A DNA stretch of 64,000 nt from Piromyces finnis finn. Its lineage: Eukaryota > Fungi > Neocallimastigomycota. The stretch covers positions 124,001 to 188,000 of the forward strand of contig MCFH01000050.1 of the NCBI GenBank assembly GCA_002104945.1. The letters run 5' to 3'. Of this stretch, positions 19,337 through 64,000 are shown piece after piece (positions within the stretch are counted from its first letter, which is position 1; each line of letters starts with the position of its first letter). Below the pieces are notes generated by a model. The model saw nothing but the letters and a program-made list of their open reading frames with translations. It was not told where the DNA came from and ran no database searches. The position numbers and the translations under genes were made by a program.

Positions 19337-21849
19337 GATGATAATTACTATTTTTTCAATAATTTTAAAAAATTATTCTTTTTCTTTTAAATATATATAT
19401 ATAATATATTAAATAATGTATGATAATATTAATAATATTATGTTTTGTTCTTTTTTAAGATTTTATTTACTTTTTAAAAATATGAATATATTTACAATAG
19501 TTATTCAAAACTATATATTAATTGAGTCATAAATTTAAAATATATATTTTATGAATAAAAAAAGTTCTTTCGATAGTGTTGTTAAAGTATATTACTTTTT
19601 TATAAAAAAAAAAAAAAAAAAAAAAAAAAGAACAAAAAAGAATATTGGCTATGAAAATTCTCTTTTTTTATATATATAGGTCTATTATAAAATAATATAT
19701 TTTATAATACCACAATTTTACTCTTTTATTTTATAATTACTGATATAGCTTTTCTATTTTAAATAATGAATAATAGTTTAATAATTTATTTTAACTTTTT
19801 TTTTTTGTTATATACTATACTGATATATCTTCTTTTAATAATTGAGATAAGAAAAGATATATTATTAAATTAATTTGTTTTTTTGTTAAAGTTAATATTG
19901 TTAGGTGTATATTTAGATAATAGATAAATTCCCAATCTTTAATATTATATTGTATATATATATATTATATTTTAAATATTACTTTTTTTCCTGTTCTAGC
20001 AATATGATTATTGTTGTATAATAATAATGATAATAGTATAGGTTAATATTATTAATTTAGCAATTTCATTTAATAGTGTAACATTTTTTCTTAAAAAAAA
20101 AAAAAGTCTTTTATGATATCTCACTTTTCTTTACCTTTTATGTTTTATTCTCTATAATAATATTTTATGATATTATTTCATTTTAACATAAAAGCATTTC
20201 AATAGATTTTGTAGAAGTAAGATTTTCTACAAATTTTTAATAAAATAACATAAAAGAGATGTAAGAGGAATCTTTAAAAAAAAAATTTATTATGGAATAG
20301 AATAATACAAAGAGTTTTTTTTTAATAATTGAAAATTTTAATTAAATTTTATTTTTGATTTTGAACTTTATAATTACTTTTTATTTATTTATTTATTTAT
20401 TTAGTAGGTATATATAAATGTATTTATATAATATTAAAAATATTAATATCAACTATTAGTTAATAAATGCATAAAAAATATAAAATAAAAATAAAAAATA
20501 TAATTTATTAATATAATATTTAATGAAAAGAATATCTTTTTTTTTTTTAATAGAAAAAAATACATGAGAAATGAAATCAGAACAAGAATTTTAATCTTTT
20601 TTAATTAAAAAAAAAAAATTAATTTTTTTTCATTTTTTTTGAAATTTTAAATTAAATTAATACTATTAAAAATATATATTGAAGGTTAATTAAATTTTTA
20701 AATTTTAAATTATAATAAAAAAATATTTTTAAATGAAGCTAGGAATTGTTTTTAAAAACTTTCTGCATATTTTGACTTTTAATACTACTTTCATACTTTT
20801 ATAAAACAAAATAAAAAGGCATTACATATATATGCATATTAATTTTTTATTTCTAATAAATTAAGGAATTTATTAGAAATAAATACTATATTATCTTTAA
20901 TATTTAGTACAACTTTTATAGTTATTAATTAATACTATTTTAAATTAAGTTTTTTTTTTATAAAACCGACACATGTTGTTAATAATAATCTTTTATTTAA
21001 ATATATGTACTTTTTATATATTAATAGAATTATTTAATTAAAAATAATTAAATATATATGTTTATAATTACATATTATTACAATAAATATAATTAAAAAA
21101 AAAAGTTAAAAAATGTTTTCTACCACTATAATAATATATATTAGGTACTATGCTAAGGCAGTAGTAACTAATAATAATAACTTATAGTGTATTGTATATA
21201 TAACTATATGAAGTAACTCTATTATTACTTTTAATTTTTAAACGATTGTATAAACCTTTTTTCATAAAAGAAAACTTTAATAATGTTTCTTTATATTATA
21301 ATTAAATAAAGTAATAAAAAAGAAAACAGATTTATTAGAATATATTTTTTAAAAGTTACGTATTATTATGTATTATTGTTTAGGTTATGTAATATTTAGA
21401 ATTAAAATATAGCTAATTTTTTTTTCTTTTACTTATAATAATATAATGTAAAATATAAAAAAAATAAACAATAAGAATTTTTTCATTTTACAATTGGTCC
21501 TTTTTACTTTATGAAATTAATATATAATTAACAAAGTAAAAGGCTTTATTTTTTTTTTAAAATTTAAAAGTATAAAATACAAAATATTTCAAAAATTCTT
21601 CATCATTAAACATTTATATTAATAATATGTGTATTTTAAGGATATTTCCATAATGTAACAACTTTGTTAATAGTATTTTATAATATACTCTTATTATAAC
21701 TTTGTTAATAAATTTAAAATAAACCCTTTTTTCTTTTTAATAGTTTTTAATAAATTTAAAATAAACCCTTTTCATATATTATATTTTACCAAAAAAAAAA
21801 AAAAAGGCAAATTTTCTTTTTTTTTAATATACATACCATACCTAAAAAT

Positions 21850-50460: not shown

Positions 50461-54086
<3,626 letters not shown>

Positions 54087-56169: not shown

Positions 56170-58402
56170 ATAATATAATACTATAATTGTTTTACTAATT
56201 TTTATTTTTATTTATTAAATAATAACATATAATCAATGTTAATATAACTTAATAACTTATAACATAAATATTAAATAAAATAAAATAAAATAAAACCATA
56301 AAATATAAAAGACGTTCATTATCAGATGTTTTTAGAATTCAAGTTATTTCAAATCCAGATATAAGATCACCAATTGCTACATTAGGTTCAACTTCTTTTT
56401 TCCATGTCAAACATGAAAATATATACATTGTTGCTGTCACAAAGTTAAATGCAAATGCTGCAATAATTTTCCAATTTTTATACAAATTTATTTCAATAGG
56501 AAATGTTTATTTTGGAAAATTTGACGAAGAAGCTGTTAAAAACAATTTCGTATTAATTTATGAATTATTAGATGGTAAATAATAATGCAATGAAACATTA
56601 TATTTAGTATTTTCAAAGTTGATAAATTTTTGAAATAATAAGAACTAAAATATAGAAATATCCGAAAAAGAAAAAAAAAAAAAAAAAAAACAATTAACTA
56701 TCAAATATTACATATTTATTCAAGAAAAAGAATTAATTTATGTATATCACAATAACTAACTATAATATTTTCATTTAATATTCATAATATAATATAACAT
56801 TAAAAAATATAAAATAATCATTATTGTTTTTGCTTAAATAAAAAAGAAATTCTTGATTTTGGTTATCCACAAAATTGTGAAACTGAAACCTTAAAGATGT
56901 ACATTACAACTGAAGGTGTCAAATCAGAAAGAGCAATTGTAAATATTAATAATAATTATATTCGACTTACCGAATTAATATATAACATAACCTTCATTAA
57001 TTAATTAATGTGTATTTCATAATTTAAATAACATTATTAATAATATATAAGAGTACTGATTCTTCAAAGATTACAATTCAAGCTACTGGTGCTACAGCAT
57101 GGAGAAGACCGGATATTAAATATAGAAAAAATGAAGCTTTTATTGATGTTATTGAAAGTGTAAATTTATTAATGAGCAATAATGGTAAGAAAAAAAAATA
57201 AATAAATAAGAAATAATTATTTTAATATAACAAAAGAATATGTTTTTTATTAATGTTTAAATATAATAATATTATATATAAAATAAAATATTAATTATAA
57301 AAATAGGTGCTGCACTTCGTTCAGATGTTTCAGGTAAAATTTTAATGAGAGCCTATCTCTCAGGTACACCAGAATGTAAGTTTGGTTTAAATGATCGTGT
57401 ATTATTAGAAAAAGAAGGTCGTAGAGATAATGTTGGAAAAAAAACAGGAAGTGTTGAATTAGATGATTGTCAATTCCATCAATGTGTCAAACTTGGTAAA
57501 TTTGATACCGATAGAACAATTAGTTTCATTCCACCTGATGGTGAATTTGAATTAATGAGGTAAGGAAAAAAAAAAAATTGAATAATACATTTAATATTAA
57601 GCTGTCATATCATATTTTGTAAAATCAATAATATTCACTTTTAATTAATGAATATAAATTTTAATAAAATTCAAAAAATATTTATATTTTAGATATCGTA
57701 CTACTGATAACATTAATCTTCCATTTAGAATAAACCCAATTGTTAAGGAAATGCCAAATAACAAAGTTGAATATCGTATTGTTGTTCGTAGTCAGTTCTC
57801 AAATAAAGTATTTGCTCAAAATGTTATTATAAGAATTCCAACACCATTAAATACTTCAAATACAAAAATACATGTCAACCAAGGAAGAGGAAAATATGTT
57901 GGTAGTGAAAATCATATGGTTTGGAAGTTAGTAATCTCAACCTAAAAAACTCGATAAAATAAATTTTATTGACCCATTTTATTAATTTTATTTTTCACTA
58001 TATTTATATTTTTTTTCATCATCATAATATCTAAATTATATTAAAAAAAAAAAAAAGAATAAATCGTTTCCAAGGTCAACAAGAATATTCCTTCAATGCA
58101 GTAGTAGAATTAACACCAACAACTAATAAGAAAGCTTGGTCAAGACCACCTATATCTATGGACTTCCAAGTATTAATGTTCACAGCTAGTGGTTTATTGG
58201 TTCGTTTCTTAAAGGTCTTCGAAAAGAGTAATTATCAAAGTGTCAAATGGGTTAGATATATGACTAAAGCTGGAAGTTATCAAATACGTGTAAGTTTTTT
58301 ATTATTTAATACAAATAAATATATATATCATAAAGTAATAACTTGTTAATAATAAATTTATTGAAATCATTATTTTTTTTTTTTTTAATAATTTAGTTTT
58401 AG
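55961..58402 (+). CDS. AP2M1: AP-2 adaptor complex subunit mu; multi-exon
   Basis: [146 protein letters not shown]. Terminal coding exon TTT TAG at 58397-58402. Confidence 0.97.
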
Positions 58403-59225
58403 GGAAGGAATTCTTTTTCCAATATATCTTTGAAATAAATATCTATTTAAAATGCTTTAAAATATATATATATATATATATATATAACTCACACTTTAAA
58501 AAAAAAAAAATAATAATATAAATTCAAAAAATTAAAAATTAAAGCACTTAAAATCTGTACACAAAAGTATAATTTTTTATTTAATTTACTCCTCCTATAA
58601 TTCAAAATAATAAACAATTTAAAAATAAAAAATAAAAAATAAAAATAATAATATACATAAATTTCATAAATAATAATTATAATTGTAATTTTAATTGTAA
58701 AATATACTAAAGTATGCTAAGGATTTATACATAAAAAAAAATAATAATAATTATTTATTTTATATAAATTAATAGTATAGGTATAAATTATATAGAACAT
58801 AAAATAACAATAAAATACATAATAAAATAATAATAAAAGATAAATATAAAAGATAAATTATATTATTATTATTATTATTATTATTATTTGGTTAAATTTG
58901 ATTTTGTTTTATACATAATTTTTAAATGATAATTTATAATTTTATTACTTGTTTTATTTATTACTTATATGAAAAATGAGACTACATATTTTTATAAATT
59001 AATAAAATTATCTAATATTTATTATTTATTTATTTATATATTATATAAGTATATGAGTTAAAATTTTATTTTTATTTTATTTTATTTTATTTTTGGTTTA
59101 AGTATATATATATTTTTTTTTTTTTTTTTTTGGGATTTACTTAATAATAACTTAAAATAAAAGATAAATGAACCCGATATATTATGAGTTTTAATTAAAT
59201 TATGTTTTTTTTTTTTTTTTTTTTT

Positions 59226-60989
59226 TTACTTAAGTTTTATTTGATTATCAAGACCTTCATAATTAAAACCAGCGGATTGTGCACTTACATCATCTTGACT
59301 ACCATGAAGAGCAAGATATAATTTATAGATTTGATAATCCATAACTTCAGATGAAGCGTCTGGATCTGCAAGAATATTCTGAGCTTGTTCAAATATTTCT
59401 TTAAATGCTATGTAATTCTCATTGGTAACCCAATAAGTTCCTGGAGTTACATCACTTCCATTGGCACTAGCTTGAAGAACAGAAAACTTCTTATTAGCAA
59501 AATTGATAGCCATAGAGAGGAATATCTTTGCGTTGTCATTTGTAGTAAAACCACATGGTGCGCCAAGATCACCAGAATAAGTGTCAACAAACCATAAACT
59601 TACTTTAAGATCCTCTTTATTTTTTGTAAATCCAAAGTAATTATGTGCATTAACAAATTCACTACATCTATTAGAAATAATTACATTATCACGACTGAAA
59701 TTTATAGCATCAGGATATTTTGTATCATCCATTTGATAATAATTGTTTTCCTTTCCTTCTGTTAAAATACCATTAATTTCATAGGCTTTAATAACATTCC
59801 ATCCAGAAGGTGTATACTTAAATACAGCCATATCACCAATTTGAAGTCTACTATCTGATAAATCCTGTTTAGTAATAACTTCACCTGACAATCCAGTAAA
59901 ATGATCACCATTGTATAGTTTTTTTCCTTCTTCATCAACAGAAGCGCGAACTATTGAAACATTACCATTAACATAGGTAAATATCTTATTTACAATAAAT
60001 GGTTCAACATAATATGCTGAAATTCTATCAATATAACCATCATTATCATCATCAACACCACAAATTTCATTACCAGCAGGAATCTTTTTATTAAGAGCAA
60101 CAACAGCATCTAAATAATCAGTATAAATTTTTTCATCGATGATATAACCATTATCACCACTTTTAGACATCCATACATTTCCATTAACAGCAAATCCCTC
60201 TGGATACTCTTCATCAAATTTCTCTTCATTCTCGGATAGATAAAAATCATTTATTGAATATCCACCAGAACTAACAATAGCTTTAAATCCATCTATAGCA
60301 TTATCATTATCTGATATTTTATATAAATGTCTATATTCATCATCTGTAATAGTTATAGAATCATCTACTCCTTGTTCTTTTCTTACAATAACAGTTGTTA
60401 TATTACTTCCACTTTCTTGATTTTCATAAGAAATATTACCTTCATTCTCCTGATATTCATTTCCATAATCTTCTTCATTGGCTAAGAAACGTCTAAATAC
60501 TTCTTGTGAATGAATAACTAAAACTGAAAATACAGCAGGTGGTATTTTTAAAGTTGGACAAAAGATTAATCCTAAATTATTAATTGTCATTTTATTTAAA
60601 TCAGAATTATCTGACACACTAGAAAATTTGATGTTCATTCAAAATTTTTAGAAATAGGAAGCAATATTTTTATATTAAAATATATAAAATTTTAATATAT
60701 AAATAAAATAAAATTAAAATTAAAATATCATTAACAAAATATAACTATTAAATTTTAACTATATTATGCCTGAATATGAATTAAATAAATATTTATGTAC
60801 CTTTTTAAATGGAAACATATATAACCTAATAAATTATAATTCCATTCCGGTATTTCTTCTAATATATCAGCAAGTTCATCATATTCTGTAAAATCTTCTG
60901 GTTTTTCAATGCAATATTTTCTTATAACATCAGTTAATTTTATATTATGTTCTTCATCAACTAATTTTGTTGGTACTTTACAGAATTAA

Positions 60990-61020
<31 letters not shown>

Positions 61021-61894
61021 TTAATAAATTGTAAATTCTTTCTAATTTTCAAAAATAAACTAAAATGGATGAAATATTTAATATTTACAGTTTCTTAAGA
61101 ATAATTTTAATAAAGTAGCTACTGTATTTGGATTTTCTCCTTTTAAATCAACTGGCTCTAAAAAATCATATTTATCTCTTAAAACTTCAACTTGATGTGT
61201 ACTTCCTGGAATTCTGTACAAACCAACTTCATCGATTGCATCGGTTAATTCATTAATACAATCATAAACAATGCATGGTATTCCATATTCATGACCTGAA
61301 TATTCCATAACATACTTTGTTTTTTAAAAATTTATTTATTTTTATATAATATGTATATATTATAATAAAATGTTATTATTTCATGTTTTTAATATTATTA
61401 TAAAATAATTCATATTATAATTTACTTCTAACGGAACACCAAAAACATAACGTTCTCTAACTTCTTGTTGTTGTACTGGTTGTTCCTCTTTTATATAAAA
61501 AATATGAGAAAAAAAATAATTTTATTAATATCATTTATTAAACATTTAATTATATAAATATAATAGGATTTTATTTTAATAAAACTTAGTTTTACAAATG
61601 TTTTTTTTTTTTAAAAAAAAATTTTAATATATAATACTAATGTATATTTTGCAATGATTTTAAAAATATTTACAAAATTATACCTTTTTTAATCTTTTGC
61701 ATAATATTACGACTTTGTTGGTTGGCATATACTGCAAATTCAGAACCTTTAGTTTTTGCATAATTTGATAATTCCATTTGCTTGTTTTTAGTTTTTTGTT
61801 TAAAATCACTAAATTTTGAAGAAAAAGCAGACCAAGCTGAGCTTTTTCCAGTTTCCTGATTATCTTCCTGTGAATTTAAACTACGATTTGACAT
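59226..61894 (-). CDS. RhoGAP fused in frame to a ~370-aa bacterial-like domain (688 aa, 5 exons)
   Basis: Exons 61894-61684, 61487-61426, 61314-61089, 60975-60801, 60618-59226 total 2067 nt in frame. RhoGAP motifs: VFGVPLE, IPCIVYDCI, GLYRIPG (Arg finger), VATLLKLFLRNLP, LLGYICFHLK, NKMTINNLGLIFCPTL. These are followed without a stop by a non-repetitive globular domain. Confidence 0.88.
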
Positions 61895-64000
61895 TATTGA
61901 ATTATATTTACTTTGTTGTTTATTTTAAAATATCTTGTTATATGATAATTTTTACAATTACTATTAAAACTTTATTTATTTCTATTGAAATTTTTTTTTG
62001 AATTTTTTTTGAAATTTTTATTGAAATATAGGCACTTTAATTTTATTATTGTTGCTTATATTATTACTATCCGCTAAATTATTATATTATTATACTGTTA
62101 TATTTTCTATATTTATTAAAACAAGTTTTCACTCATTTATTTATAATTATTGTTATTCCTCGAATATTACTATGTTTTATTGTTGAAATTATAAATAAGA
62201 AAAGAATATTTTAATAATAATTAAGATATCCTTTTTTTTTATGTAATTAGTACTGATATTAAAAAATAAACGAATATTATATACATAATATAGTTTATAT
62301 AATACAATTCAACGTTACTATAAAATTAATATTTGATTAAATTTTATTATTTCTCGATAATATATATTATTAAATATACTTTGAAGATGTTTAATTTTTT
62401 CTATTCTATGTTTTTTTCTTTTGTTTGTTTGTTTTTGTTTTGTTTTGTTTTGTTTATAAATTATAATTTATTATATGAAATGTTGAAAATTTTAATTATA
62501 AATAATGTCCCTATAAAATTTAAATATTTATCATAACAAAATATTTACAAATTAATAATTTTAATATTAAATATTTGAAAATATTATTTTATTATTTATC
62601 ATTACTTAAATAAAAGATGACTATCTTACTTTCAATTTTTGTAAGGCCAACGTTAATATGAATGTCTAGTTATTTATTATAATCAATTAATAGAAATGAT
62701 AATTTTTACTTTGACAATTTATTTTATTATATTAAATTTTAAATTTATAATCTAGCTATTAAAAAAAAAAAAAGCAAGTCAATTTTATTTATTATTTAAA
62801 GCTTTAATATAATTATTCTTCTTTAAAAAAGAAAAAAAAGATATATATTTTTAGTATTGTTCTAAACAAATTTTACTTTATAATGATATTAATAAAGTAA
62901 AATTATAAATTATTTAAAATAAAATAAAAAATTATATTTATGTTATAATAAAAAAAAAAAATATTTAATATTTATATTATACATTAAAAAGGGATAAATT
63001 CAACATTTTCAATTTTTTAAATTTTCATATATTAAAAATATATAGTTAATATACTTTAATTATATTAGTTTACATATAATTATATAACAAAAATTTCAAA
63101 AACTAGTAATGATTTAATTCTATTTTTAATTATATTTTTAAAACTAATAAAACAACTTTGAGGATGTTGGATATGATTGTAAAATATAAATATTCATGAA
63201 CTATATATCATATATCAACAACATTATTATTTATTCATAATCACCATTATATAATGATTATAGTTGTTGTGATAAAAATGATATGTTTAGTATTAATAAA
63301 ATTTTAATAGATAAATATTATTATATAATATATATAATATATTTAATAATATAATTAAAAATCATTTGTCATGTTGATCCTCCTTTTAAAACCATCATCT
63401 TTATATCATATCCTATTACTATAGAAATAAAAACAATAAATAAGTATTATTTTTAAAGAATTATAATAATTATCAAATTACTCTTAACGTTTCTTTTTGT
63501 TTGCTTAATTCATCCTATATTACATCTATCTTACATGAATATAAATTATTTATTATCATTTGTCATTTGGTATATTAATTTTTACTTTTTTAAAATGAAC
63601 TCTTTTTTTTTTTTTCCTCTTTTAACATTTCATTATTATATAAACAATTATGAATTCATGTATTTGTTTTTTTCAATATCGATAATATTTCTTTATATTA
63701 ATATGCTTAAACCACTATCATTATTATTAATATTATTATTCTAATTATATAGCAATATTATTACCAAATAATAATAGCGGCCTCTTTTAATTAAAAAAAA
63801 ATATTAAGTAATTAGTTATAAAACAACATAAAATTGATATGTTAAATTTTATTGTTCATTACGGTGACTTACCATCATATCATTGGTTTAACTCTTAATA
63901 TATAGAAAATTATGAATATTTGTATCCTTTCTGCATTTAATATTATTAATATACATTATTAAACCATATATTAACTTTGTTTAATAGTAAACTAAAAAAT

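Follow-up and report, generated by a model that had tools for sequence, protein, structure and literature searches.

Horizontal gene transfer into the Neocallimastigomycota is well documented and has mostly involved enzymes (10.1101/487215), and in early-diverging fungi the fusion of xenologs with host domains is reported to be common: about 100 of 829 xenologs are fused, all such fusions having been detected only through named domains (PMC11291939). The gene described here is a RhoGAP gene on the reverse strand of a 64,000-nt stretch of the Piromyces finnis finn genome (GCA_002104945.1, contig MCFH01000050.1, forward-strand positions 124,001-188,000; hereafter the window, from whose first letter all positions are counted). 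It belongs to the same class of event as the post-transfer xenolog fusions of early-diverging fungi (Ciach et al. 2024, PMC11291939), in which bacterial DNA arrives within or next to a fungal gene and joins its reading frame, and is not a new kind of phenomenon. Whereas those cases were found via named domains and are mostly enzymes, the acquired part here, a module of 392 amino acids (aa) at the C-terminal end, has no named domain. What is new is the architecture, in which a RhoGAP is joined to a bacterial surface module, together with the switch of that module from an extracellular to a cytosolic setting, its presence in rumen ciliates, and the module family itself, which is undescribed. We put the probability that the module was acquired horizontally from gut bacteria and fused to a RhoGAP in one gut-fungal subgroup at about 0.8. 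The first-pass annotation of the window knew of no described RhoGAP with this architecture, and our searches agree: the literature on horizontal transfer into Neocallimastigomycota and on FIVAR with anaerobic fungi contained no report of the architecture or of the module family, and neither the chimeric gene nor RhoGAP nor FIVAR is mentioned in PMC11291939 or 10.1101/487215, in text and supplements as far as these are available.

The closest described proteins each correspond to a part of the chimera. With the unfused RhoGAP of Anaeromyces robustus (P0248) it shares the N-terminus, the RhoGAP domain, the arginine finger and all invariant positions, but where P0248 and its unfused kin carry a 50-70-aa tail with the motif ENTS[ED]TLI, the P. 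finnis protein has the 392-aa bacterial module instead. The predicted three-helix bundle of the module superposes on the FIVAR proteins NagH of Clostridium perfringens (2ozn), ZmpB (7jrm) and Embp (6gv8); unlike them, the module has a single unit rather than an array, and this unit never occurs apart from a beta-rich core of 288 aa, which they lack. Bacterial members of the module family itself (AFDB cluster A0A257FJP7) are homologous over the full length (35-45% identity, E values down to 1e-150), have the same predicted fold, and share the ISNR motif and the DxDxDG loop. In contrast to these members, which are secreted or lipid-anchored and tied to the wall, the fungal copy has no export signal and sits on a cytosolic signalling domain. 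While gene transfer into gut fungi has been documented mainly for secreted enzymes and metabolic genes, here a non-enzymatic surface module has joined a core signalling protein.

The chimeric gene (61894-59226, reverse strand) consists of five exons of, from 5′ to 3′, 211, 62, 226, 175 and 1393 nt, which sum to 2067 nt in frame with GT..AG at every border. They encode 688 aa, a sequence that agrees in full with the P. finnis protein deposited as BCR36DRAFT_335513 (P0001, 'hypothetical protein'). The features of the gene are as follows.

61684-61894, reverse strand: exon 1, with the start codon (ATG at 61894) and the hydrophilic N-terminal region; donor GT after 61684
61426-61487, reverse strand: exon 2 (62 nt), leading into the RhoGAP domain; AG/GT borders, in frame
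61089-61314, reverse strand: exon 3, N-terminal RhoGAP half, including the arginine finger (Pfam PF00620 profile positions 1-67)
60801-60975, reverse strand: exon 4, middle of the RhoGAP domain; AG/GT borders, conserved in the ortholog alignment
59226-60618, reverse strand: exon 5 whole, 1393 nt with no intron
60483-60618, reverse strand: start of exon 5, last RhoGAP helices (PF00620 profile positions 119-147; translation)
60405-60482, reverse strand: acidic linker of 26 aa from the RhoGAP domain to the acquired module (translation)
59229-60404, reverse strand: the entire acquired module, 392 aa, intronless (translation)
59541-60404, reverse strand: beta-rich core of the module, 288 aa, of no named family (no Pfam or NCBIfam match; predicted model)
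60018-60053, reverse strand: EF-hand-like loop DDDNDGYIDRIS within the beta-rich core (translation)
59667-59678, reverse strand: ISNR, the most conserved motif of the module family, within the beta-rich core
59229-59540, reverse strand: FIVAR-like three-helix bundle and short C-terminal tail, 104 aa (family profile against FIVAR units; structural matches)
59226-59228, reverse strand: stop codon TAA, followed by an A-run (gene model)

Much of this layout had been read from the letters in the first-pass annotation and proved accurate. It had described four small exons (62-226 nt) ahead of one of 1393 nt, and the sizes agree; it had placed the last RhoGAP helix, an acidic linker and an intron-free domain in one exon, as the translation of exon 5 bears out. 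The composition of that domain is indeed free of poly-N/Q, and the DxDxDG motif it named is the loop listed above. The RhoGAP domain is, as claimed, complete with an intact arginine finger: Pfam RhoGAP (PF00620) matches exon 3 with an E value of 4.6e-12 and 46.5 bits (cut-off 24.5), the full protein P0001 bears a precomputed PF00620 assignment, and the finger GLYRIPGS (61201-61224) lies in a G-x-Y-R-x-x-G context, its arginine (R125) being invariant in 11 aligned orthologs. The annotation had also seen neither a signal peptide nor a transmembrane segment. Consistent with this, we found no signal peptide (the mean hydropathy of residues 1-30 is -1.27) and no transmembrane segment, the sole hydrophobic 19-mer being a buried RhoGAP helix, and a Pfam scan of the protein gave no SLH, LysM or choline-binding domain. 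Judged by its sequence, then, the fungal protein carries the module, yet fails as a secreted or wall-anchored surface protein.

The RhoGAP half has relatives that point to a fungal, vertically inherited protein. A 'Rho GTPase activation protein' of Anaeromyces robustus (P0248, 373 aa) is 79% identical and unfused, as are eight further orthologs, metatranscriptome-type proteins of 327-378 aa, so that the check for unfused orthologs in gut fungi suggested in the first pass has a positive outcome; further away, RhoGAPs from early-diverging fungi such as Basidiobolus, Blastocladiella and Mortierellomycota are related to it. The gut-fungal orthologs, whether fused or not, have the conserved N-terminus and the RhoGAP domain in common and diverge at the linker, where the unfused forms continue into an acidic tail of 50-70 aa with the conserved ENTS[ED]TLI. 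On a RhoGAP tree the three fused proteins cluster together and are nested among the unfused orthologs, which fits one fusion event in a gut-fungal subgroup. Because the unfused ancestor persists in sister lineages, fused and unfused forms can be compared directly. ENTS[ED]TLI closes an otherwise low-complexity acidic tail in P0248, P0180 and P0249-P0254 and is missing from the fused forms; it could be a short linear motif for binding or sorting whose place the bacterial module took.

The module half has relatives of a different kind. An exhaustive HMMER search of 1.84e9 representatives with the module returned 144 proteins, 42 of them at E < 1e-30. The non-fungal full-length matches fall into two groups, bacterial proteins with export signals and an AT-rich rumen-ciliate clade, and among eukaryotes the module was found only in the gut-fungal fusions and in this ciliate clade. 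The bacterial members have a signal peptide or lipobox ahead of the module and come in several architectures: three tandem copies with choline-binding repeats, LysM, SLH with or without a BD-FAE esterase, and Cu_amine_oxidN1. Those with names come from metagenome-assembled genomes of Oscillospiraceae, Clostridiales and Bifidobacteriaceae and from an uncultured Treponema. A scan of one genome per bacterial species with a 16-sequence alignment yielded a single further copy, on an uncultured Treponema contig, and named donors are therefore few. The genomic context of one homolog with choline-binding repeats (P0018) is plainly bacterial, with two-component system, MurJ/MatE and NUDIX genes adjoining. 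As such, the origin in a bacterial surface protein proposed at the outset is upheld: outside gut fungi the relatives are exported or wall-anchored bacterial proteins and rumen-ciliate proteins, and the homologs proved neither broadly eukaryotic nor normally attached to RhoGAPs. Among gut Clostridia, the family, a beta-rich core with one FIVAR-type unit, occurs commonly in surface proteins of the SLH and choline-binding kinds.

The module matches no Pfam or NCBIfam family, and its fold was predicted with AlphaFold2. A single-sequence run reached a predicted local distance difference test (pLDDT) score of 31.6, and a run with a 49-sequence alignment reached 94.9 with a predicted template modelling score (pTM) of 0.92. 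In the latter model an alpha/beta lobe (about residues 1-110) is followed by small beta-barrels (about 113-287), a stretch that holds the DxDxDG loop and the ISNR helix, and by a three-helix bundle (289-367) with a short tail, in keeping with the beta-rich core described in the first pass. The sole whole-module fold match was the unnamed AFDB cluster A0A257FJP7, at a template modelling (TM) score of 0.91 and 32% identity; the barrel region had partial matches among SLH/S-layer proteins and DUF5666/5667 proteins, and the ESM Atlas neighbours were unnamed Bacillota clusters only, at a non-diagnostic score of 0.75. In the PDB, Foldseek found nothing meaningful over the whole module (TM < 0.2), a profile search of the sequences there gave no match, and wider structure searches matched the helical end only. 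The DxDxDG loop is conserved family-wide, many bacterial members having D, N/D, D, G, D and E at positions 1, 3, 5, 6, 9 and 12.

The helical end can be placed more closely. Residues 293-365 of the module match repeat units, assigned to FIVAR by Pfam, in long surface proteins, and a profile built on residues 286-392 of 49 family members matched the single FIVAR units of P0116, P0090, P0084, P0075, P0101 and P0061 with independent E values of 4e-7 to 1e-4 (Z = 1.8e9). The Pfam FIVAR model itself (PF07554) gave no match to window segment 59229-59534 at E <= 10, and since it misses this segment we term the module end FIVAR-related and not a Pfam member. The predicted helices (289-308, 328-346 and 352-367) form a bundle that superposes on the CAMP-factor C-domain, NagH, EngBF, ZmpB and Embp at Z 4-6, values that are common among helical bundles; Hsp70 lids and designed bundles are matched as well. 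Together, profile and model indicate that the last ~100 residues are a predicted FIVAR-type three-helix bundle, and the FIVAR-like C-terminus of the first-pass annotation stands on the family profile (to 4e-7) and the bundle matches, though PF07554 itself misses it.

The second non-fungal group is a tight AT-rich clade of free-standing proteins of 375-423 aa without export signals. One such gene (L004:10001-11212, the same as L006:13638-14849) lies on a 26.8-kb contig (L004/L006/L007) with a G+C content (GC) of 18%, where its neighbours are Arf, UQ_con, protein kinase, DOT1, Sec1 and CEP44 genes. Inside this contig there are head-to-head (TTGGGGA)n(CCCCAAT)n arrays at L006:8048-8150, L007:428-535 and 2423-2490, and L004:4464-4512 and 20644-20718. 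Telomeres made of (CCCCAAT)n have been published for Entodinium caudatum and every other rumen ciliate examined (PMC6211341; 10.1101/2022.01.05.474053). Several macronuclear chromosomes of a ciliate thus appear to have been linked at their telomeres during assembly, the one with the homolog being about 16 kb long. The eukaryotic neighbours, the 18% GC and the (CCCCAAT)n telomere junctions thus identify the AT-rich clade as rumen ciliate. In one cluster of the clade (P0029/P0179) the protein starts with MGNDICC directly after in-frame stops, a myristoylation/palmitoylation-like N-terminus, and P0166, which falls in the same 90% cluster, occurs on 48 contigs. All AT-rich free-standing homologs are from ciliates; no free-standing, signal-peptide-bearing or dockerin-bearing paralogs of the module were found in gut fungi. 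ERZ4903371 contig_77860 is also listed for rumen-ciliate homologs of the module.

The phylogeny of the module (IQ-TREE, LG+C20, 52 sequences, no outgroup) places the five fungal sequences in one clade (100/100) nested inside bacterial diversity, the outcome that the first-pass annotation had named as support for horizontal transfer, with P0018, P0040, P0052, P0033 and P0037 as nearest neighbours (90/93). The ciliate clade (100/100) adjoins another bacterial protein, P0022 (95/92*). Passage of the module between fungi and rumen ciliates, in either direction, after a single bacterium-to-eukaryote transfer would account for free-standing homologs in rumen ciliates, on a contig with eukaryotic genes and ciliate telomere junctions, and a forced clade of fungi and ciliates is not rejected by the approximately unbiased (AU) test (p = 0.25). 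The best tree, however, gives each eukaryotic clade different bacterial neighbours, and the fungal domain is ~39% identical to the ciliate proteins, no closer than to the bacterial ones (36-45%); we regard such an exchange as unlikely. The opposite direction, in which the module would be anciently eukaryotic and gut bacteria would have taken it from fungi or ciliates, draws on the fact that a tree with no outgroup cannot alone show the direction of transfer. Against it, the bacterial copies are far more diverse, with ~40 clusters at 50% identity in Bacillota, Actinomycetota and Spirochaetota, and they occur in many architectures with wall anchors and bacterial FIVAR relatives, whereas the eukaryotic copies form two tight clades from herbivore-gut organisms only. 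Besides the ciliates, moreover, each non-fungal full-length match with an N-terminus starts with a bacterial signal peptide or lipobox, and the exhaustive search thus holds no other eukaryotic homolog. A eukaryotic origin is on these grounds scarcely credible, and a bacterial origin of the module is, as far as sequence comparison goes, well supported.

Two further explanations were weighed. Misassembly, bacterial contamination or a gene-calling error that merges two genes has to be considered, as some of the post-transfer fusions seen in early-diverging fungi are known to stem from wrong gene calls (PMC11291939). Here, however, the last RhoGAP helices and the module lie in a single uninterrupted open reading frame (ORF), so that their join needs no splice. 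The same ORF layout, with a 76-aa exon-1 ORF, an 86-aa RhoGAP ORF and a 452-aa last ORF, recurs in a relative at 79% identity, on 15 genomic metagenome contigs that come from several JGI samples and were assembled separately. In a more distant relative (P0004, P0005), the entire 667-aa fusion is encoded in one ORF on intronless contigs of 2.1-2.2 kb from two JGI samples, whose short untranslated ends are transcript-like. In four P. finnis RNA-type runs from three studies, 0.68-0.71 of the sampled 31-mers of 59100-62000 are present, as are all words (1.00) across the junction 60250-60618, while the intron words are missing. The exons would give an expected share of 0.71, and exon 5 with its flank alone at most 0.53; the observed share equals that of the exons, exceeds 0.53 and is too low for intron-containing genomic DNA. 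With host-like codon usage and eukaryotic flanking genes in addition, the artefact explanation is already refuted for practical purposes. The gene is a genuine chimera transcribed across the junction, and the true fusion to a RhoGAP lacking an export signal that was first proposed from the sequence is substantiated by the single ORF, the independent and the transcript-like contigs, and the words of the RNA-type runs.

The module might also be a functionless passenger, recently captured and decaying neutrally at the end of the RhoGAP. Other gut fungi manage with unfused orthologs, the module has diverged more quickly than the RhoGAP part (56-58% versus about 80% identity to P0004 and P0005), and the glutamate at position 12 of its loop is lost. 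A neutral passenger would nevertheless be hard to reconcile with an ORF that stays full-length in five or more fungal sequences, even where identity falls to 56%. Compared with the relative at 79% identity, the module has a synonymous divergence (dS) of 0.45 and a ratio of non-synonymous to synonymous divergence (dN/dS) of 0.26, similar to the small RhoGAP/linker part of exon 5. Among 40 bacterial sequences 64 columns are conserved to at least 80%; the four fungal proteins all keep 45 of them, and the positions retained include R246, W271 and the ISNR motif. GC at third codon positions is 0.126 in the module and 0.115 in the RhoGAP part, that is, the codon bias of the host, and this fully host-like codon usage implies that the capture is old. 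By these measures the module is old, integrated and under purifying selection, which leaves the passenger explanation very unlikely.

Several results weigh against the preferred reading, a bacterial module acquired by, and put to use in, a gut-fungal RhoGAP. The bacterial sister group of the fungal clade is only moderately supported (90/93, not starred), and the cluster of fused forms on the RhoGAP tree only weakly (77/51). The four runs are labelled 'RNA?', their kind having been guessed, and it is from word shares and the deposited gene model that the continuity of the P. finnis transcript is deduced. The fungal loops retain positions 1, 3, 5, 6 and 9 of the DxDxDG loop and have serine in place of the glutamate at position 12, a loss that weakens the case for a Ca2+ sensor. 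Lastly, the beta-rich core obtained no family name and no solved relative in structure and profile searches, and for this reason the mechanism can only be inferred.

We propose that the ancestral fungal RhoGAP would have consisted of a hydrophilic N-terminal region, the RhoGAP domain and a short acidic tail, and that in one gut-fungal subgroup this tail would have been replaced by the 392-aa module, obtained from gut bacteria through horizontal transfer. In its bacterial state the module is extracellular, placed behind a signal peptide or lipobox and often in tandem, with SLH, choline-binding or LysM domains as its anchors in the wall. In the fungal state it has become part of the last exon, inserted without introns, with host codon usage and under purifying selection. 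As the fused protein has no signal peptide, the module would sit in the cytosol. The module is displayed on bacterial walls beside anchors and sometimes esterases and has no recognisable catalytic signature, which makes binding its most likely function; as an appendage of the fungal protein it may, through such binding, localise or gate the predicted GTPase-activating (GAP) activity towards a Rho-family GTPase. Localisation or partner binding is accordingly the role that we tentatively suggest for it, with Ca2+ sensing possible and ranked below. The MGNDICC start of one ciliate lineage and the missing export signals of the ciliate proteins fit an intracellular, membrane-proximal use of the module in eukaryotes. 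A bolder and rather doubtful idea is that an extracellular wall module was turned intracellular in two unrelated eukaryotes of the herbivore gut, as an input or targeting domain of a RhoGAP in the fungus and as a free-standing protein in the ciliates, where it might recognise a shared rumen ligand or a membrane or Ca2+ cue, coupled in the fungus to Rho-controlled polarity or the cytoskeleton. The ligand of the module, once identified, would account for its role in bacteria as well as for its benefit to the eukaryotes.

Gene neighbourhoods of the bacterial homologs were compared on three contigs. On two of them (L005, with the stretch 12-1942, and the contig of P0021), genes for a 412-aa HisKA/HATPase_c kinase and a 231-aa OmpR-type regulator lie just upstream of the module-bearing surface-protein gene or genes, in the opposite orientation, with a MatE/MurJ-type gene on the downstream side; the kinase/OmpR-type pair and the MatE/MurJ gene may represent a conserved regulatory neighbourhood. 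The third contig has a Clostridial sporulation-type context. These three contigs, with their OmpR-pair or sporulation-type context, gave no clue to module function. In P0020 and P0040 the module is joined to BD-FAE domains, of feruloyl-esterase type, and to SLH repeats, a pairing from which the module may work at the interface with the plant cell wall or the bacterial wall.

The scaffold bearing the chimeric gene is 409 kb long, and the window is strongly AT-rich, with a GC of 19% overall and 7-12% within introns. Two neighbours of the gene are ordinary eukaryotic housekeeping genes.

51900-53240, reverse strand: alanyl-tRNA synthetase
57345-57563, forward strand: fragment of a clathrin-adaptor (AP-complex) mu subunit

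Within the chimeric gene itself, intron 3 holds a (TA)n microsatellite of ~30 nt at about 60990-61020.

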